Source: Malacoraja senta (lineage: Eukaryota). Taken from it: DNA of 64,000 nucleotides. The stretch is from assembly GCA_038087875.1 (NCBI GenBank), contig CM075977.1, forward strand, positions 115,816,001 through 115,880,000, read 5' to 3'. The notes under the pieces were generated by a model, which did no database searches, was not told the origin of the DNA, and worked only from the letters and a program-made list of their open reading frames with translations. Below, piece after piece: positions 34,008 to 49,500 of this stretch; the first letter of the stretch is position 1, and each line of letters starts with the position of its first letter. A program made the position numbers and the translations under genes.

Positions 34008-34410
34008 TCATAAGATCATGTGATAGAAGTAGAATTCGGCCCATCAAGTCTACTCTGCCATTCAATCATGGCTGATCTATCTCTTCCTCCTAACCCCATT
34101 CTCCTGCTTTCTCCTGCCTTCTCCCCAAAACCTCTGACACCTGTACTAATCAAGAATCTATTTATCTCTGCCTTAAATATATCCACTGACTTGGCCTCCA
34201 CAGCCTTCTGTGACAAAGAATTCCACAGATTCACCAAGCTCTGACTAAAGAAATTCTAGTAGAAACTAGTAGAAGCATCCTCTCCACATCAACTCTATCC
34301 AAGCCTTTCACTATTCGGTACATTTCAATGAGGTCCCCCCTCATTCTTCTAAACTCCAGCAAATATAGGCACAGTGCCTTCAAACGCTCATCATATGTAA
34401 ACCTACTCAT
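34008..34410 (-). mobile_element. CR1 LINE 3' fragment (second subfamily)
   Basis: VNLWNSLSQKAVEAKSVDIFKAEI. Confidence 0.88.
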
Positions 34411-34555
34411 CCTTTTGAGGGATAATGTTGATGAAGCCTTTGGAAATTGTTGCAGTAGGTATATTGTGCAATCATGGTGTTTTGAAGGTGAAGGGAGTGA
34501 ATGATCAGAATGGTGGATTGTTTGACAGTTTCATCTTAAATGGTGTAAAGCTTAT

Positions 34556-35029
34556 TGTAGTGGCCATTTGGCCTGTTTTGCATGTCATTGAGGATGGCAT
34601 GTGCCTTTAAATTTTGGACTGCCTGTTATATTGTGGGTGGGATTTATGACTGTTTTTGGGTGTGTTTGGAGCTTAGATGCTTGGTCAGAAGTTTAGTTTT
34701 TAGATTAGTTTGGAGAGACGATGGGGAAGGTTAACCCTTCTACCATGCGGGCCAAATGCCAGATCTTGCCAGTGTTACGGAGACACGAGGAATAAGCTGG
34801 AGTTCGAAGAAGATTGTAGTAAAATTGTCGGAAGCAGTTTGGATGCATTTTACCGTTTTCTATCAACAATAAAGCATTTATTCATCAAAAGACTGTTTTG
34901 AAGCCATGTCTGAGAAGAAGTTCTGGAGGTCTCTGTGAGCTCGCATGCGTTTAGAAGACTTCAATCATTCTATTCCATTTAGCGTCTGGGGTGCTAATTA
35001 CCTGAAAGATATGAAAATCTGCCGCTACA
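34556..35029 (+). repeat. 5' LTR
   Basis: TGTAGTGGC...GCCGCTACA with AATAAA at ~34868. Confidence 0.95.
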
Positions 35030-35086
35030 TTAAGTAGAAGGTAACCTCCGGCAGGGGGGTTAAATACCAGTCCCAGAGAGTGGGAC

Positions 35087-35194
35087 AGAAGATTAAGTCG
35101 AAGCAGGACGACCAGGCTAAGATCTCGGTGAGGTTTAGCCAGAAGATTAAATCAAAGCAGGACGACCAGGCTAAGATCTCGGTGAGGTTTAGCC
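35087..35194 (+). repeat. 54-bp tandem duplication in the LTR-element leader
   Basis: AGAAGATTAARTCRAAGCAGGACGACCAGGCTAAGATCTCGGTGAGGTTTAGCC x2, plus a partial third copy. Confidence 0.9.
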
Positions 35195-35627
35195 AGAGGA
35201 GAAAGTGGTTCCAGGAGGAACTGAAGATAAAGATCTCGGTCAGATGAGGCCTTGAGGTCTCTCAACAGCATCGAGACTTATCTGAAGACGTATCACAGGA
35301 TTTGTGAATACATATCGATTATTACTCTTTGAATTGAAATCACAGCTTTAATTAAAAGACTTCTGTAACAGAGCCACCAGAAGGTGTTTTCTCCAGCTTG
35401 TCTGGGGAAAGCAGTCCGACCTTGGATTGTTTTGAATCGCTTGTGATAAGCGCATTCCATTTGAATTAGTATCATCTTTTTGCACCTGGAGTTAGAGAGA
35501 TGTTCTCTACATTATCAGTATGTTATGATTTTGAAAGAAATGTTGACAAAACAGAGCCACAGCTACTAGCAGACTTTTGTTCAATTACTTTAAAGACTTG
35601 GTAATCTGCCACAACCTCTTTAAAATC

Positions 35628-38230
35628 ATGGAATTAGAAGAGGAAGAAAGAGCTATGCCAGATGAACCATGTGGTGGTAAAGAAAGACCCAGACAACTTA
35701 AAGAAACAGATAATGCACATACTGCCTGCTTGAGAGAAACCAAGAGAGAGATAAATGAATTATGGTTACAGGTTAACAGATTCATTGATACACAGAAAAA
35801 ACTAATGGAATCAGAACAGAATGTGATCAAGGTGAAATCTAATATGAGCCAACTATGGAACCTCTGCGAAGAGGTTGCAAAGAAACAGAATGTACTGCTG
35901 TGTTCACAGCCGTCTCGGGAAGAAGCCAGAAGACACGCCCAGTGGTGGGAAGACAAATGGAAGATATTTAATGGTTTCATGGATAAGGCAGAGATGTGGT
36001 TATCTAAAATTATATCACAACTTACGAGCTTAGTAGCTGGCAGTGCGAAGCAACAAGGTGCCAGAATGGAAGGTGAAAATTCAAGCAGTGAAGCATCTGA
36101 CAGTTCAGATGATGAGTCTCCTGCGAAAGTCAAAGGACAACAAGGTTCGTACAGTGCTGTACCACCTCCCAAAATTCAGAATGGAAAAGCAGGCGTGACC
36201 AAGAAGAAACTAGCTGTAGGAGTGAGTAAAATGGAAATCAGTGACTTGTCAGATGAGAACTCAGACAGTAGTGATGAAGATGCAACCCTAAAACCTGCCA
36301 CAATAATTGCACAGAGGAAAGCTGACTCCACGCTGGCCAAGGTGGCTGCTGCCGTTCAGAAGCCTGCGGTCAAGAAGGCCAGTACCAGCTCGGACAGCGA
36401 GTCCGATTCTGAAAGTACCGAAGAATCTTCAAGCGATGGAGAGCCTCAGTTGAAGACCCCCGTAGCCCAAGTACGAATGGCAAAGGCCACGCATTCATTA
36501 CTGCCTGCAAAGTCTGTGGCCATAAAGCCGACAGCAGCAGCAGAGACTGCAGTAGCAGCTCAGATAGTTCAGGATATAAATCTGGTTATTCAGCCAGTTC
36601 GGTTTCAAGGGCTTCTGCTCGATTGGGAGTTAAAGCTGAGCTAGCTGCTCTCTCAATAGAAGCGGATGCCATGAAGAAGAAACATGAGATCGAGCGGGAT
36701 CAAGAAGCCATGAGGCGACATCAAGAAGAGATGACGTGACGGCAACAAGAGATGACACGACGGCAACAAGAGATGACGCGACAAGAAGATGAGATGAGGC
36801 GACATAAGGAACAACTGGAATTAGACACAAAGATGGCGGTGGCCAAAGCAAAGAAGGAGATACTGGAAAGTGAGGGGTCAAGATGCAGCTCTAGATCGTC
36901 AAGGACGATGGGCTCTGGATCAAGAAGAAAAACTGCTCGAAATGAATCAGCAGTTGGATCAATTCCACAATCGAGGTCCACCGGATTTCTAGGCTTTGAA
37001 AACCTATGGGAACAGAGGAAGATGGGTGAAACTTCATCTCAGCAAATGAGTGCTAGATCAAAACCAATTACTATTGGAGCGTCTGTGGATGCTCGAGACA
37101 AACCAATTGCGGACCACGCTTTTTCGAGGCCTGGTGCACAGGCTCGAGCAAGCCAATTTGAATCACAAAAGCCTGTTTATGAATAGGTGGAGCCAAGACG
37201 GATGGATTATTGGCACTGTTGAATAGGCAATCTGAATTCAATGAGATCATAGCTCAACAAAATACCTCTCTCATTCTACCACCAGTAGAAATTCCTACGT
37301 ATGGTGGAGATCTGTTGGAGTATGAAACTTTCGTAAGGGCATTAGAAGAAATATTAGAAACGGAAGTTATGAATGAGAAGGAGCGCTTACGATTTCTGTT
37401 GAAGTATACAAGTGGAAGTGTGAAAGCACTTGTAGAAAGTTGTCAGAAAGAGCAAGGCAACCAGGGCTCTAAAAGGCGAGAAGATTACTTGAAGAACGTT
37501 TTGGTGAGGAACAGAGGATTGCTAACGCTTACATGGAGAAGGCCCATGCTTGGAAAGGAATTAAACCAGAAGATGGGGAAGCATTGAGTGATTATGCAAT
37601 ATTTCTGAGAGATTGTTGCAGCTTGATGAGAAATCTCGGCCACATGGAAGAAATGAATCTTGTGAGTAATACTAGAATCATCTTGAGAAAGTTGCCCAGA
37701 AGACTGAGAGAAAAGTGGAGAGACGAAGCAGGCAAAATTAGAGATGAGAGGAACCAAGTAGCCAGGCTACCAGACCTGGTGGAATTCTTGGACAGGGAAG
37801 TATGGAACATGTTAGAGCCAAAGATTACAAACCAATGGCAACTAACAAAGGTTCTACCTTTACCAAAACTGAAGAAAGATCTGAATCTAAGAGGCGTAGT
37901 TTGCTATCACGACCGTACCTCTGGAAAAGACAGATGGAAGAAAAATAAATGTGTCTACTAGCAAGCAAATAGTATTTTGTTTGTTATGTGATGAAGTTGG
38001 TCACACCATAAGATGGTGTCGTAGATTCAAGATGAAAGAATATGAAGACAAGATGGATTTCTTGAAAGAGAAGGGAATCTGTTTTGGATGTTTGTAAAAA
38101 GGACATATGGTGAGAGACTGTAAGAGTCCTATAATTTGTTATGAGTGCAAACAATATCATCCTGAAGCACTTCACATTGAAGAAGAGCTGCCAGAGCACT
38201 GGGAAGAAGAAGAAGAAGAACCGGTACAAA
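35628..38230 (+). pseudogene. BEL/Pao gag (frameshifted) with coiled-coil N-terminus, low-complexity insert, DUF1759-like core and Cys/His knuckles
   Basis: LPPVEIPTYGGDLLEYETFVRA, RLRFLLKYTSG, RKLP..LREKW, DLVEFL; C..C...H, CFGC...GHMVRDC, CYEC...HPEALH. Confidence 0.85.
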
Positions 38231-38329
38231 TGGATGATGAATTACCAGAGCAAATAGAAGAAGAAGAACTGGAACAAACAGAACAGGGCGAGAAGCCAAC
38301 TACTAGAAATGCTATCACCTCGCCTCAAG

Positions 38330-39845
38330 TAACTGCTCATATTGGGGCCGGGGTAGAAGCTTGTAATTTTTCTATCTTACCAGTACAGGTAAGGAACAGT
38401 AAGACGAATACAGTGTTGCAAACATGCTTTTCTGGATCACGGAAGTTCGAATACCTTTTGCACAGAAAGCCTGACGACGAGACTGAATATCAGAGGAGAA
38501 GAGACTAAGATTTGATTACGTACCATGACTAAAGATAAAGAGAGCTGGAGTCATTGCATTACGAATATGGAGATATCCAGTTTGGACGAAGATAATTTCA
38601 TACCGATATCTGAAGTGTTTACGCATGGAACTATGCCTGTTGATCGTCAAAATATACCAAGACATGAAGACTTGAAGCAATGGCCTTACCTAAAGGATGT
38701 CAAGATATCTGAAATAAATTCTAGTGTTGATCTACTGATCGGAACGAATGTTTTGAAGGCTTTGGAACCTATACAGATTGTTAGGAGCCAAGGCGATGGA
38801 CTGTATGCCATGAAAACCCGACTTGGATGGATTATCTATGGGTCCTTGAAAAGAAACCACAAAATCGGAAATCAGATGAACTGTCCTGCCATTGCTATTA
38901 ATCAAATGTCTACTGATGAATTAGAAAAGTCGGTGATGAAGCCATATAATCATGACTTTAATGAAAGTACCAGCAAGGAATCCGAAGAGATGTCGAAAGA
39001 AGAGTTGAAGTTCATGGATGTTATGAACTACTCAGTGAAAACTGACAGACACTATTGTGTGGACTTACCTTTCAAACAAGAAAGTGTTAATCTGCCGAAT
39101 AATCGTCGTGTGGCAGAGCAACGTACCCAGACTTTGAAACGCAAGTTTGGCGAGAATAGTACATTTCATGAATTAAGAATCTCTTTGAAGAATAATTTCT
39201 ACAAGGATGATTACTTAAAATCCAGGTCTACTGAGCAGGAAACAATTCTACCAGTAGAACATCTGACTTCTCTTTGAAATAAGGGAGGATTTATACTTTC
39301 GAAGTGGAACAGCGACAATTGTGAAAGCATTCCACTAGCTAACAGCCAAAGAAACCAGAGAGTTGGATTTGGACAAAGACGATCTGCCAATGGAAAGATG
39401 TTGACACAGAAGAAAATTCTACAAATTAAGTTTCCAGAGAACTGACAGTGAACCGCTTCTTAAGCGAGAAGAAATGCATCAATGAACTAAAATCTCTCTG
39501 CAAGCCAGACAGAGAATGGCCAAAGCTTGAGCTGGGATTTGAAATCTCTTCTAATGACTCGGACATTAAATCAAACTTAACGGTGAACTTTATTGTTAAA
39601 GATCCTGTTATTCTTTTGAAGGATTTTCATACTTCAACTTTACTGTTACATCACATCCATGAGTTGATCGGACATGGAGGAAGACGTTTCATGCTGTTAA
39701 AGCTTTGGACTATTATGTTTTGGACTATATACTGGGTATCATGCCTGATTTAAAGGGTTTGGTATGCACGGTACGACTTGAATTAAAACCACTGTTGTAA
39801 TAAGATTAATAACTTAGTTGTGCTTGTTTCTAGAAGGCAAAAGTG
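38330..39845 (+). pseudogene. BEL/Pao pol remnant: protease region present; RT, RNase H and integrase largely deleted
   Basis: ILPVQV, AFLDHGSSNTFCTE, DLLIG, KTRLGW, LPFK..LPNN; then NNFYKDD, GGF.LSKW, HIHELIGHGG and C-terminal GLV..V...LCLFLE. Confidence 0.85.
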
Positions 39846-39902
39846 AAGATGGAAGAATCGATGAAGAATTCTGATTGCGTATATATAGTGCATGCTAATT
39901 TT

Positions 39903-39978
39903 TCCTCATTAGTATAGTGGTTTAGTATCCTCGCCTGTCACGCGGTAGACCGGGGTTCAATTTCCCGACGAGGAGCCA
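39903..39978 (+). tRNA. tRNA-Asp(GTC) gene/pseudogene with encoded CCA, inside the LTR element
   Basis: TCCTCATTAGTATAGTGGTTTAGTATCCTCGCCTGTCACGCGGTAGACCGGGGTTCAATTTCCCGACGAGGAG-CCA; cloverleaf with two stem mismatches; anticodon GTC at 39937-39939; TTTT at 39984-39987. Confidence 0.92.
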
Positions 39979-40093
39979 CAGGGTTTTATTCCCTGACCTT
40001 TTGCTTTTAATATATGTTAAGCCTTTATGACCACTTTTTTAATGTCTATTAGTAATTGCCTCATTATATACACGGAACAATTAGGGGCCGGTA

Positions 40094-40591
40094 TGTAGTG
40101 GCCATTTGGCCTGTTTTGCATGTCATTAAGGATGGCATGTGCCTTTAAATTTTAGACTGCCCGTTATATTGTGGGTGGGATTTATGACGTGTTTTTGGGC
40201 GTGTTTGGAGCTTAGATGCTTGCGCAGAAGTTTAGTTTTTAGATTAGTTTGGAGAGGCGATGGGGAAGGTTAACCCTTCTATCATGCGGGCCACATGCCA
40301 GATCTTGCCAGTGTTACGGAGACACGAGGAGTTTGCTAATGTCTAAAGTAATAAGCTGGAGTTCGAAGTAGTAGTAACGAGTCGGAAGAAGTTTGGATGT
40401 ATTTTACCGTTTTCTATCAACAATAAAGCATTTATTCATCATAAGACTGTTTTGAAGCCATATCTGTGAAGAAGTTCTGAAGGTCTCTGTGTGAGCTCGC
40501 ATGCTTTTAGAAGACACCCCCTTCAACCATTCTCATCTATTTAGCAGCTAGGGTGCTAATTACCTGAAAGATATGAAAATCTGCCGCTACA
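40094..40591 (+). repeat. 3' LTR
   Basis: Highly similar to the 5' LTR, with substitutions and small indels. Confidence 0.95.
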
Positions 40592-42094
40592 CTTATTGAG
40601 TGTTTTTGGACTTGCGCCTTGCTGATGCTGGATCGGCTTTGGGGATTCTGGAATTGAGAGATTTGTTGTCGGATTCCCTGCCTCTAATCTATTAAAACCA
40701 CTGCATTTGTACCAGATCATCTGCGTAGTTCAGATTCTGGTCACTGGTGAATCCTAACGCAGAATGTGATTGTCAGAGAAATTCAGTGGCGGTATTGCTA
40801 ACAAATGTCAAGGGCGATTGAAGATGATTGGGCCTGGGATGTTGCCAAATGAACCTTTACAGTGATTTTAAAAAATATATAGGTTGTACTGTTCCTACAG
40901 ATGAGATTTACTTTCTGCTGAGGTTTTATTCAAACTTTCGGCACATTCAATTTCATTCAATTTACATGAAAGCAAAAGACAACTTGTTGGAAATACTCAG
41001 CAAATTATTAAGATGTAATAATTCTCACTATCTAGATGCTGCCTGGGCTGCTGAGTGTTTCCTCCATTTTCTATTTCTTACAATTCAAATTAGTTGTCAC
41101 TCCACTGTGTAGCCACCTGCACTGGGCACCAGATGGCTCTATATAGCTACTTTTACTCTCAATTTTGTCTCCAGATAACACTTTTTTCTTCTGACCTACT
41201 CACCATTGCACGCATCTTTGTTTGTGTGTGTGTGTGATCATTCACTAATTGCCACAACGAATTAGATGATCATGTAAATATTGCAGGAATGAAGATGCTA
41301 CACACGGATGGCATCAATGAATGTTAACAATAACTGGGAAGTGGAGAAGTGAACAATGAAATATCTGGACTATAATTGCCATTTATGAAAATAATGGCAT
41401 TTTATACTCGTCTACTTTTAACTTAGTCAGTGGAACCAGCATTAAGGACAAACCCACTAAGGTTGATTTTCACATAGACAAAGCAAGAAATTGTGCATTT
41501 TCTATCAGACCATTGGTAATAAGATGCCCCAAAAGTTAACTCCACAGCAATGCAGAGCACTAATGCTTCTGGCACTCACTGAAGAAAGTTTCGGTCTCTC
41601 CTGCCATTGAATGCCAACCCAATACTCTTTGAGGTTGACAAAGTGAATGACCACATTATGTTATGTTTTTTTCTGCTGACTTCTGTGCTAGAATATATTA
41701 GAAATCAGCTGGAGGGTTGAGATGAAGAATCTTTCTGGAGATTCAAATTCACAGCAGCCTTCATTGCCCCAGAGTTAAACTCATTTTGTTCTTCTGCACT
41801 TTTTTATTTTTGTTTGTACAGCTGGTGAATGCAAATATTATACATTAAAATGTTATTTGAGAATAAAACACTCAAAATTCATTTTTGAGAATGCTACAAA
41901 CTTCTTTGCTATCATTCAAGCACATGCTCTGGTGATGTAGAACTCATACAATAAAGATACATCAGAGTAATGGCAGAAATGGAACGTTATTTATGAAGAG
42001 TGGCAGTATACTTATTTCTACTGGAAAAAAACTATGGAAAGTAGAGTTAAATAAAGTTTTTGAAGATATAGGTTTTGATAAAGAAAAACTATTT

Positions 42095-42759: not shown

Positions 42760-44100
42760 GGACCTTGGGAGTGTTGTAGAGCAGAAGGATCCAGGAGTAC
42801 AGGTAACAGAGTTCCATGAAAATGGTGTCACAGGGTGGTCAAGATGCCCTTCAGTACACTGGCCTTCATCATACGGTCAAAAGTGATAGAAGTCAAATTA
42901 GCCCATCAAGTCTACTCTGCCATTCAATCATGGCTGATCTATCTCTCCCTCCTAACCCCATTCTCCAGCCTTCTCCCCATAACCTCTGATGCCAGTCAGG
43001 GTATTGCGTGTAGAAGTTGGGATGTCATGTTACAGTTGTACAAAACATTAGTGAGGTCACACTTGGAGTACCATGCTCAGTTTGGTCACCCTGCTATAGG
43101 GAGGATGTGATGTCATTAAGCTTGAAAGAAACCAGAGAAGATTTACGAGAATGTTGCCAGGACCTGAGGGGCTGAGCTATAGGGGCGAGGTTGTGCAGGC
43201 TAGAAGAGCAGGAGGCTGGGGGGTGATCTTATACAGGTGTATAAAATGATGACGGGAATAGATAAACTGAATGTACAGAATATTTCACCCAGGATAAAGG
43301 AATGATAAACAAGAGGACATATGTTTAAGGTGACCGGGCAAGATGCAATACAAACCTGAGGGGCAAGGGTGGTGGACATATGGAATGAGCTGCCAGAGGT
43401 GGTAGTGGAGGCAGGTACTATAACAGCATTTAAAAGACACTTGGACAGGTATATGGATAGGAAAGGTTCAGAGGGATATGGGGCTAACAAGGGCAGGTGG
43501 AACTAGAGTAGATGTGGCATCTTGGTTGCATGGGCAAGTTTGGCGGATGAGCCTGTTTCTGTGATGTATGATTCCATGACTCAATGTTTCAGGTCATTGG
43601 TGAAACCACACCATCAGTACTGAATACAATATGGTGTTATGGTGTCTTTATTTACAGAAAGATATTGGAGATTGTTCAAGCAAAGTTCACAAGATTGATT
43701 CCCAGAATAAAGGGATTGTCTTATAGGAATAGTTAACCAAGTCGGGCCTGAACTGATTGGAATTTGGAAGAATGGGATATGTAAAGCACTATTGAAATAT
43801 ATACAGTATAATGTTCTGAATGCGCTTGGCAGGGTAGACGAAAGAAAGATTCCCCTTGTGGAGGAATCGTGACATTCTCAGTATAAGGAAGCATTTAAGA
43901 TGCACGAGAGATGTAATTTCTTCTCTCTTAGGATTGTGAATTTCTAGAATTCTCTAGTCTACGGTGTGATGAAGCTGTCATTGAATAAATTTAAGGCTAG
44001 CATGGATAGGTTTTTGGACATGGAGGAGTTGAGAATTATGGGGAACAGATAGGAAAATGGATTTAAGGCCAAAATCCATGATCTTATTGAATTATGAAGC
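42760..44100 (+). mobile_element. Old CR1 RT C-terminal fragments (two families), with a minus-strand CR1 tail at ~42868-42990
   Basis: MLQLYKTLVRSHLEY, WNELPEVVVEAGT motifs. Confidence 0.75.
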
Positions 44101-46524: not shown

Positions 46525-49500
46525 TGCCACTGCTACACGGGTGGGTTTAAACTAAATAGTGTGGGGGGAGGAGACAAATTGGAAATACAAGGATGGAGTT
46601 AAAGGGAAAGGGAGTATAGGAAAAGTTAAGAAAGACACCAGAATTAACGGGGCAGAAAGCTCACGAAGGGAGAGGAGAGTGTAACGGCAGATTTGTATAT
46701 CGTTCAAGAGATTACTCCCTCTAGCCGCCAAATGGACAGCATGGTTAAGGGGAATATCTTTTATATGCATGCGAGCTCACCGTCAGAGAACATCAGAGCT
46801 TCTTCACAGACAAATCTTCCAAAACAGTCTTTTGATTAATAAATTCTTTATTGTTGAAGAAAAACAATAAGGTACATCCAAACTTCTTCCGATTCGTTAC
46901 TATAATCTTCATCGAACTCCAGCTTATCGCTTTAAACATTAGAAAACTCCTTGTGTCTCCGTTACAGTTTGCATGGTCAAAGGGTAAACCTTCTCCATGC
47001 TGGTTCCACAGTAAACTAACTAAGCTGCGCAAGAAACCTAGCTCAAAACACGCCTTAAAATACGTCATAAATCCCACCCACAATATAACGTGCAGTCTAA
47101 AATTTAAAGACACATGCCATCATCAACGACACACAAAACAAGCCAAATGACCACTACAGAGAGTATGGACAAGTGAAATAGGAATTGAAGTGAAAGGTGA
47201 GGTGAATAATGGATTTAAAGTATTATATATGAATGCACGAAGTATTAGAAATAAAGTGGATGAGCTTGAGGCTCAGTTAGAAATTGGCAAGTATGACGTT
47301 GTGGGAATTACAGAGACATGGCAGCAAGAGGACAAGGGCTGGAAACTGAATATTCAGGGGTATACGTCCCATCAAAAAAGACTGACAGGTGGGCAGAGAG
47401 GATGGGGTAGCTCTGTAGTGGTCCAAAGGGAAATTCAGTCCCTTGCGAGGGGTGACATAGAATCAGGAGATGTTGAATCAGTATGGATAGAACTGAGGAA
47501 TTGTAAGGGTAAAAAGACCCTAATGGGACTTATCTACAGGCCCACAAACAGTAGCCTGGATATAGGGTGCAAGTTGAATTAAGAGTTAAAATTGGCATGT
47601 CGCAAAGGTAATGCTATGGTTAATATGGGAGATTTCAACATGCAGGAGACTGGGAAAATCAGGTTGGTACTGGACCCCAAGAAAGGGAGTTTGTGGAGTG
47701 CCTCCGAGATGGATTCTTAGAGCAGCTTGTACTGGAGCCCCCCAGAGAGAAGGCAATTCTGGATTTAGTGTTGTGTAATGAACCGGATTTGATAAGGGAA
47801 CTCGAGGTAAAGGAGCCATTAGGAGGTAGTGACCATAATATGATAAGTTTTAATCTACAATTTGAGAGGGAGAAGGGAAAATCAGAAGTGTCTGTATTAC
47901 AGAGCAAAGGGGACTATGGAGGGACCATGAGGGAGGAGTTGGCCAAAGTTGACTGGAAAGATACCCTAGCAGGGATGACAGTGGAACAACAATGGCAGGT
48001 ATTTCTGGGAATAATACAGAAGGTGCAGGATCAGTTCATTCCAAAGAGGAAGAAAGATTCTGAGGTGAGTAAGAGGCGATCGTGGCTGACAAGGGAAGTC
48101 AAGGACAGTTTAAAAATAAAAGAGAAGTATAATATAGCAATGATGAGCGGGAAGCCAGAGGATTGGGAAACTTTTAAAGAGGAACAGAAGATAACTAAAA
48201 AGGCAATACGGGGAGAAAAGATGAGGTACAAAGGTAAGCTAGCCAAGAATTTAATTGAGGATAGTAAAAGCTTCTTTAGGTATGTGATGAGGAATAAAAT
48301 AGTTGAGGCCAAAGTTGGACGCTTGAATACAGAAACAGGTGAATTTATTATGGGGAACAAGGAAATGGCAGACGAGTTGAACAGGTACTTTGGATCTGTC
48401 TTCACGAAGGAATACACAAACAATCTCCCAGATATACTAGTGGCCAGAAGACCTAGGGTGAGGGAGGAACTGAAGGAAATTCACATTAGGCAGGAAATGG
48501 TGTTGGGTAGACTGATGGGACCGAAGACTGATAATCCACAGGGCCTGATGGTCTGCATCCCAGGTTCCCCATGAAGGTGGCTCTAGAAATAGTGGATGCA
48601 TTGGTGATAATTTTCCAATATTCAATAGATTCAGGATCAGTTCCTATGGATTGGAGGATAGCTAAATGTTATCCCACTTTTTAAGAAAGGAGGGAGAGAG
48701 AAAACGGAATAATAGACCAGTTAGCCTGACATCGGTGCTGGGGAAGATGCTGGAGTCAATTATAAAAGATGAAATAGCCGAACATTTGGATAGCAGTAAC
48801 AGAATCGGTCCGAGTCAGCATGGATTTACGAAGGGAAATCATACTTGACTAATCTTCTGGAATTTTTTGAGGATGTAACTAGGAAAATGGACAAGGGAGA
48901 GCCAGTGGATGTAGTGGACCTGGACTTTCAGAAAGCCTTTGACAAGGTCCCACATAGGAGATTAGTGGGCAAAATTAGAGCACATGGTATTGGGGGTAGG
49001 GTACAGATATGGATAGAAAATTGGTTGGCCGACAGGAAACAAAGAATCGGGATTAACGGTTCCCTTTCAGGAAGGCAGGCAGTGACTAGTGGGGTACCGC
49101 AAGGCTCGGTGCTGGGACCGCAGCTATTTACAATGTACATTAATGATTTAGATGAAGGGATTAAAAGTAACATTAGCCAATATGCAGATGACACAAAGCT
49201 GGGTGGCTGTGTGAACTGTGAAGAGGATGCAGGGTGACTTGGACAGGTTGGGTGAGTGGGCAGATGCATGGTAGATGCAGTTTAATGTGAATAAATGTGA
49301 GGTTATCCACTTTGGTGGCAAGATCAGGAAGGCAGATAATTATCTGAATGGTGTCAAGTTAGGAAAAGGGGAAGCACAACGGGATCTGGGTGTCCTTGTT
49401 CATAGGTCACTCAAAGTAAGCATGCAGGTACAGTAGGCCGTGAAAAAGCTAATGGTATGCTGGCCTTCATATCAAGAGGAGTTGAGTATTGGAGCAAAGA

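Follow-up and report, generated by a model that had tools for sequence, protein, structure and literature searches.

The question raised by this locus is how a stretch of protein resembling the nucleolar phosphoprotein Nopp140 (NOLC1) came to lie inside the gag gene of a retroelement. The locus belongs to Malacoraja senta and was studied in a window of 64,000 nucleotides, by which we mean the whole stretch analyzed (assembly GCA_038087875.1, contig CM075977.1, positions 115,816,001 to 115,880,000; the coordinates below are those of the window). Here, a long terminal repeat (LTR) retrotransposon, probably of the BEL/Pao type, occupies 34556–40591 with the 5-base duplication CTTAT on both sides, and the Nopp140-like segment (36079–36568) sits between the two LTRs of this duplication-bounded element. 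We regard it as rather probable that a BEL/Pao-type LTR retrotransposon of skates took approximately 490 bases of a spliced host mRNA, most likely that of nolc1, and that the hybrid then multiplied.

The open reading frame (ORF) in question extends over 35577–36644 and comprises 355 codons if counted from a TTG or 338 codons from the ATG at 35628. Its first part is the helical N-terminal region of gag (35628–36078, forward strand), which shows 86% nucleotide identity to the Logan contig L001 and 77% amino acid identity to P0001, the protein encoded on this contig. Three long helices are predicted within residues 22–150 of the ATG-started ORF and the protein beyond them is predicted to be disordered. 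Then follows the Nopp140-like segment on the same strand, in which four acidic-serine blocks of 15, 19, 21, and 14 amino acids alternate with three linkers of 35, 33, and 29 amino acids rich in lysine, alanine and proline. Serine accounts for 18% of the segment, alanine for 15% and lysine for 12%. Of its 37 serine and threonine residues 13 are direct CK2 consensus sites, a number that rises to 20 when hierarchical sites are added. Furthermore, the GC content is 0.50 in the segment vs. 0.41 and 0.45 in the flanks. For the block measurement and the Smith-Waterman alignments a frame break near the 3′ end of the segment, described below, was represented as X in the segment protein. An earlier note on this DNA had described the frame as a coiled-coil gag N-terminus followed by alternating acidic-serine and lysine/alanine/proline-rich repeats, and the frame, the helices and the block lengths all bear this out.

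Is the segment an ordinary part of this gag? A word-seeded HMMER search with the whole ORF yielded P0001 (236 amino acids) as the only database relative, and this protein does not contain the segment. P0001 shares its sequence with the window copy up to the residues A-R-M-E, continues with 16 other residues and rejoins at a serine-rich motif leading into the gag coiled coil. On nucleotide level the window and L001 are 85–91% identical on both sides, with 497 bases of the window (36079–36575) standing opposite 48 unrelated bases. As read from this alignment, the segment is a sharp-edged replacement of 48 bases and foreign to this gag. The earlier note had placed it at 36035–36565; the segment itself stands, but its edges are shifted to 36079–36568 by the comparison with the relative, and the first 44 bases of the former range are ordinary gag.

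The insertless 236-amino-acid ORF is represented by seven cluster members (P0001–P0007) on nine contigs of 1.1–1.7 kb and possibly represents a transcribed copy. An in-frame TGA is found in L001 at a position that is shown as W in the protein record.

Whether the replacement is a feature of more than one copy can be seen in contigs that were aligned to 35600–37100 and come from four public runs, one for each of four organisms with different codes. At most 22% of the 31-mers of the segment are present per run, and the runs therefore represent relatives and not the sample of the window itself. In all four organisms the gag flanks reach summed contig depths in the thousands, which identifies the family as highly repeated. 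The depth of the segment amounts to hundreds to thousands, corresponding to approximately 6–20% of the flanks in the three large runs and to 44% in one very small run, and the segment contigs are 88–94% identical to the window, similar to the gag flanks. Both junctions are bridged by records with at least 31 letters on each side, the left one in organism C (X3 record 17, 36007–36275), the right one in organisms A (X1 record 4, 36329–36615) and D (X5 record 28, 36284–36617). The empty form is visible in the other organisms as a joint from 36078 to 36577 together with loose ends at 36078 and 36569 that resemble the filler of L001. At exactly the 36079 site, the segment is missing from most family copies of these four organisms.

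The hybrid is an old, amplified minority subfamily, which makes up about one tenth of the family by contig depth and occurs in at least four organisms with different labels. A check of its presence across element copies thus returned the hybrid as the minority and the empty form as the majority in the four organisms. The segment had been called “not a usual BEL gag feature,” and it is indeed absent from L001 and P0001 as well as from most copies, which is not what a standard component of this gag would look like.

Within the segment several length differences among the copies are multiples of three (3, 3, 12, 30). Further hybrid variants were observed as well, namely a joint from 36193 to 36592 in organism D, whose left edge lies near a putative exon boundary at ~36190, and a joint from 35707 to 36131 in organism A. 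In the latter organism the right two thirds of the segment are several-fold deeper than the left third. A second copy of the segment was not found in the rest of the 64-kb window.

These data bear directly on the idea that a processed nolc1 pseudogene fragment landed by chance in this single copy after its integration. The intron-less, host-like sequence itself would be explained in this way, and it is the only observation that favors such an event. Against it stand the identical junctions and the multi-copy segment in the contigs of other organisms, and furthermore neither a poly(A) tail nor a separate target-site duplication is present at the ends of the segment. A private insertion after integration was therefore rejected, since the junctions are common to other organisms and the segment is multi-copy there, and we attach practically no probability to a chance landing.

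A second question is whether the hybrid can be read as one protein. The 5′ junction is in frame and gives the Nopp140-like frame, as had been claimed, but the claim does not hold at the 3′ side, where the window copy leaves the frame of 35628 at 36520–36530 (forward strand; three-frame translation) and enters that of the downstream gag. Due to this, the last 36 codons of the ORF (from ~36525), the lysine/alanine-rich “tail” included, are an out-of-frame reading. Translated in the frame of the downstream gag, the sequence from 36525 onward contains the fourth acidic-serine block, which runs directly into the serine-rich hinge of gag.

The hybrid copies of the four organisms occur in two lengths that differ by one base within the short A run at 36520–36530. 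The longer form accounts for about one third of the segment-bearing contig depth and the length of the window copy for about two thirds; both are present in the three large runs, and the small run contains the longer form only (3/3). By length arithmetic, the copies longer by one base have a net gain of 450 bases (150 codons). Since the replacement nets exactly 450 bases in this form, some copies keep one frame across both junctions, and they would give a continuous protein composed of the gag helices, approximately 3.5 Nopp140-like repeats and the rest of gag. The A run at 36520–36530 could be a hot spot for insertions and deletions, and slippage during expression is also conceivable.

Which host gene might have supplied the segment? 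The repeat period is approximately 49–50 amino acids. In human Nopp140 there are 10 repeats, whose acidic blocks measure 15.7 ± 1.6 and whose linkers measure 32.3 ± 7.2 amino acids (PMC12951762), whereas treacle (TCOF1) has 11 repeats over residues 214–953 (740 amino acids), i.e., ~67 amino acids each (PMC9133508). A period of about 50 amino acids therefore fits Nopp140 (48) better than treacle. Among the 100 clusters that came out nearest in an ESM Atlas feature search, 20 were NOLC1/SRP40_C and seven were treacle, with scores of 0.69, which is to be read at the level of a lead only.

For a comparison on residue level, human NOLC1 and TCOF1 were taken from a print in the supplement of PMC11427299, which was converted by optical character recognition (OCR) and contains errors. 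The sole tyrosine of the segment lies in G-S-Y-S-A-V-P-P-P, nine residues past an acidic block. In this reading of the human NOLC1 central domain the sole tyrosine lies in G-P-Y-S-S-V-P-P-P, about ten residues past an acidic block (PMC11427299). Downstream, both sequences continue in the same order with R-K-A-D-S, after which S-L-(L)-P-A-K leads into a D-S-S-S...S-S-S-S block. Neither the tyrosine motif nor R-K-A-D-S nor S-L-P-A-K with its acidic block was seen in the printed TCOF1 (PMC11427299). In Smith-Waterman alignments the tyrosine linker of NOLC1 scored 48 against the segment, with shuffled sequences at 27.9 ± 4.8 and 10 of 5000 shuffles reaching this score (p ~0.002). The stretch with S-L-P-A-K and the block scored 53 (shuffles 35.3 ± 5.2; 24 of 5000, p ~0.005). 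A treacle linker used as control was not significant, as 1149 of 5000 shuffles reached its score.

The segment shares with the NOLC1 central domain acidic-serine blocks of ~15 and lysine/alanine/proline linkers of ~32 amino acids, CK2 consensus sites, and Tyr-Ser-x-Val-Pro-Pro-Pro and Ser-Leu-Pro-Ala-Lys in the same order, although it has only about 3.5 of the ~10 repeats. For the LisH N-terminus and the SRP40_C C-terminus of NOLC1 there was no Pfam match in the ORF, and the flanks are gag. Judged by these features, the segment would be at most a fragment of the NOLC1 repeat domain and not the NOLC1 gene, with nolc1 as its likely donor, a view that we hold with moderate confidence.

A different host gene as donor, either tcof1 or a lineage-specific gene built on the same acidic-serine/basic plan, appears improbable to us. 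The acidic clusters of CK2 sites between basic stretches are common to treacle and Nopp140, whose repeat regions have a similarity of ~35% (PMC9133508); treacle is among the nearest Atlas clusters, and NOLC1 is not confirmed by any sequence search. For treacle in particular, the period argues in the other direction, its repeats being ~67 amino acids long and encoded by one exon each. Furthermore, the tyrosine motif and S-L-P-A-K with its block are present in the printed human NOLC1 and not in the printed TCOF1, the treacle linker aligns no better than shuffles, and Pfam gave no Treacle match. As to the former designation as Nopp140/NOLC1- or treacle-like, the alternating architecture, the CK2-type sites and the Nopp140 period agree with the segment, the treacle period and linker do not, and an identity with NOLC1 is suggested, not proven.

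A possible view of the donor gene itself is offered by one contig of organism D (X5 record 26, 2204 bases). Here, positions 533–644 correspond to 36189–36300 and positions 1627–1726 to 36306–36405, each with 87% identity. The two blocks are separated by 982 other bases, and ~500 bases on each side do not match 35600–37100. The depth of this record is 81, comparable to that of single element copies in the same run. Its layout resembles two exons of a donor gene and is suggestive of an intron between them. If the record were an element copy, three separate disruptions within 220 bases would be needed.

Several points speak against a capture from nolc1 and have to be weighed at this place. A phmmer search of the segment against 1.84 billion representative proteins gave no match, word-seeded HMMER searches with the 165-amino-acid segment and with a 72-amino-acid piece gave none each, and Pfam returned nothing for the segment up to an E-value of 10. 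These blanks carry reduced weight, because low-complexity sequence is filtered and the word-seeded tool works within a range of lengths that excludes full-length NOLC1. BLASTP of the segment against a 50-amino-acid stretch of the printed human NOLC1 gave no alignment either, which is why Smith-Waterman alignments with shuffles were used. In these the NOLC1 linker without its acidic block was not significant, the spacing between the motifs is unlike that of human NOLC1, and the motif statistics are modest, with an OCR copy as the human comparison sequence. The exon-like layout comes from one record of one run, which was judged by its match coordinates, and is suggestive. Finally, with about two thirds of the depth having the length of the window copy at the break site, many hybrids may never have encoded a continuous fusion. 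Other searches were uninformative: a PDB sequence search gave chance matches only, Foldseek with an AlphaFold model against Swiss-Prot gave meaningless matches (TM < 0.25), as expected of a disordered protein, and a search of paper texts for the tyrosine motif gave nothing.

Acidic or basic disordered stretches are frequent in Gag proteins. It is to be considered whether the segment is derived from a host at all, or whether retroelement sequence has grown in the serine-rich hinge or was recombined from another gag, so that the likeness to Nopp140 reflects a convergence of composition. The segment is located exactly in the serine-rich disordered hinge of gag, the database searches are all blank, and a rearranged copy of the element could account for the exon-like contig. 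A growth in place is at odds with the nucleotide sequence, where a tandem-repeat search found only a 15-base mini-array at 36530–36558 and gag's own 21-base array at 36699–36805 and, inside the segment, no repeat of unit length; a recent tandem expansion was rejected for this reason. Moreover, a sharp replacement of 48 bases is not an expansion, the GC content of the segment exceeds that of its flanks, the NOLC1 motif matches beat the shuffles, and the exon-like contig, if it were an element copy, would take three independent breaks. We consider a non-host origin quite unlikely. With respect to the proposal that a spliced host mRNA was transduced, the evidence bears out that the segment is foreign to gag, lies between the LTRs and was propagated, and its origin from spliced mRNA is suggested by the one exon-like contig.

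How could such a capture from nolc1 have proceeded? The nolc1 mRNA would have been packaged together with element RNA, and reverse transcriptase would then probably have switched templates twice, at short imperfect matches, between host mRNA and element RNA. At each edge of the segment there are a few imperfectly matching bases, which would fit a template switching by reverse transcriptase as described (PMC13317346). In this way the host fragment would have replaced 48 bases (16 codons) in the serine-rich, disordered hinge of gag, and the fact that the hinge was already serine-rich and disordered may explain why the insert was tolerated. The spread of the subfamily would have been possible via the enzymes of autonomous relatives.

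With regard to its effect on the element, the segment is most likely a passenger that the element tolerates in a disordered linker. Phosphorylated Nopp140 repeats, each of them, bind to disordered tails rich in nuclear localization signals, as present in proteins of small nucleolar ribonucleoproteins (snoRNPs) and of RNA polymerase I (Pol I), in a phosphorylation-dependent manner (PMC12951762). By analogy, a Gag with about 3.5 repeats could go to nucleoli or Cajal bodies or condense more readily. It is possible, if doubtful, that the hybrid Gag is functional in this sense, i.e., that its CK2-phosphorylated repeats bind such tails on proteins of the nucleolus and the Cajal body and send Gag-RNA particles elsewhere or condense them, which would explain why the subfamily persisted. 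The 13–20 CK2-type sites, the multi-copy state of the hybrid in four organisms and the length differences in multiples of three would be in line with this. But most of the hybrid depth has the frame-break length of the window copy, the window copy has no pol enzymes, and an amplification in trans requires no functional gag. To go further and propose that the element has domesticated a part of a host nucleolar/Cajal-body scaffold, with CK2-phosphorylated Gag docking on snoRNP and Pol I tails, particles being routed to or condensed at these sites and the trait being selected across skates, is a speculation to which we give little credence.

The element that carries the segment in the window is delimited as follows. 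The duplicated CTTAT is found at 34551–34555 and, identically, at 40592–40596. The 5′ LTR (34556–35029) and the 3′ LTR (40094–40591), both in forward orientation and of the form TG...CA, align with 88% identity when gaps are counted and with 90–95% in ungapped blocks. The window copy is an old insertion with an LTR divergence of approximately 6–12%.

Downstream of the segment the rest of gag is degraded (36569–38508, forward strand). According to the ORF list, the alignment with L001, the translation and the tandem-repeat search, it consists of the serine-rich hinge, the 21-base array, a gag core and a Cys/His region, distributed over several frames, and the ORF list and three-frame translation reveal additional changes of frame as well as an in-frame stop near 36737. 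The 21-base (7-codon) tandem array at 36699–36805 has ~5 copies; its length differs widely in the other organisms, where many joints fall into 36663–36838.

The pol part is represented by two remnants on the forward strand. At 38525–39277 a protease-like region resembles DUF1758 of BEL/Pao pol, the nearest named ESM Atlas clusters being DUF1758, Peptidase_A17 and RVT_1, and at 39448–39753 there is an integrase zinc-binding-like remnant found in the ORF list. The tentative assignment of the window copy to BEL/Pao is based on these protease-like Atlas neighbors (score 0.88) and on a weak Pfam match to Integrase_H2C2 (E 0.28), with Pfam giving no match for the protease-like region at 38525–39277. 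Between the two remnants the ORF list of the window copy contains neither a reverse transcriptase nor an RNase H. The window copy is defective and non-autonomous, as evident from the frame change, the stops and the lack of reverse transcriptase, RNase H and integrase core. A movement after the losses in pol, if there was any, would have needed the enzymes of autonomous relatives.

A copy of tRNA-Asp(GTC) with an encoded CCA end is located at 39903–39978 (ARAGORN and sequence), on the sense strand of the element, which is the forward strand, and 115 bases upstream of the 3′ LTR. CCA is not encoded in eukaryotic tRNA genes, which suggests that the copy arose from a mature tRNA by reverse transcription. 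Immediately downstream of the 5′ LTR, the sequence at 35030–35060 does not start with TGG, and it shows no complementarity to the 3′ terminus of this tRNA-Asp copy. Within the leader that separates the 5′ LTR from gag, a 54-base unit is present as a tandem duplicate at 35086–35197, 97% identical over 58 bases. Outside the element, a solo-LTR-like sequence on the reverse strand at 46680–47158 has 75–78% identity with the LTRs, and a 76-base repeat, 96% identical and probably part of a dispersed repeat, flanks the element on both sides (34039–34114 and 42901–42976).

Host sequences within retroelements are known from other systems. In the gag-onc fusions of acutely transforming retroviruses, spliced host sequence is joined in frame with 5′ gag, and the carrier is replication-defective and uses the enzymes of a helper (reviews of the capture are references 18–19 of PMC4299795). 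The element described here likewise combines host-type sequence with 5′ gag in a defective carrier. In contrast to these viruses, it resides in the germline as an endogenous element and has been amplified on an evolutionary time scale, its cargo would be a low-complexity scaffold fragment and not a signaling gene, and gag continues downstream.

Crocodilian endogenous retroviruses have captured the host mRNAs of KIT-ligand and nectin3 (PMC4299795). These are similar to the present case in that coding sequence of host origin (for the skate element a probable one) lies without introns between the LTRs of a vertebrate retroelement, that the capture preceded speciation and that several copies exist. 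They differ from it in being retroviruses that have taken whole ORFs, either added as a further gene or substituted for env, whereas the element of skates would hold a disordered-repeat fragment of ~160 codons inside a BEL/Pao gag. Maize Bs1 and other plant LTR retrotransposons have transduced gene fragments and formed hybrid ORFs by abnormal template switching of co-packaged RNAs (PMC13317346). Like Bs1, the window copy is a non-autonomous LTR element with a probable host gene fragment, a hybrid ORF and a proposed template switch, but it is an animal element, probably of the BEL/Pao type, unlike Bs1 and the plant Ty1/Ty3-type elements, and the insert lies in the gag hinge. A search of the literature found no report on host capture by BEL/Pao elements or on a capture of NOLC1; “NOLC1” in retrotransposon papers turned out to be a target locus for genome editing and is irrelevant here.

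That LTR retroelements can take up coding sequence of their host is well established for plants and for transforming retroviruses, and animal germline cases are few. Here, the cargo would be a piece of a multivalent scaffold protein under the control of phosphorylation, placed within the element's structural protein, and the hybrid is multi-copy in several species. Confirmation of the host locus would make this a natural experiment on whether a transplanted disordered “sticker” domain can alter the site of retroelement assembly, and also on exon shuffling by template switching of reverse transcriptase in vertebrates. If the segment is a passenger only, it would be a clean and datable marker of the history of this family in skates.

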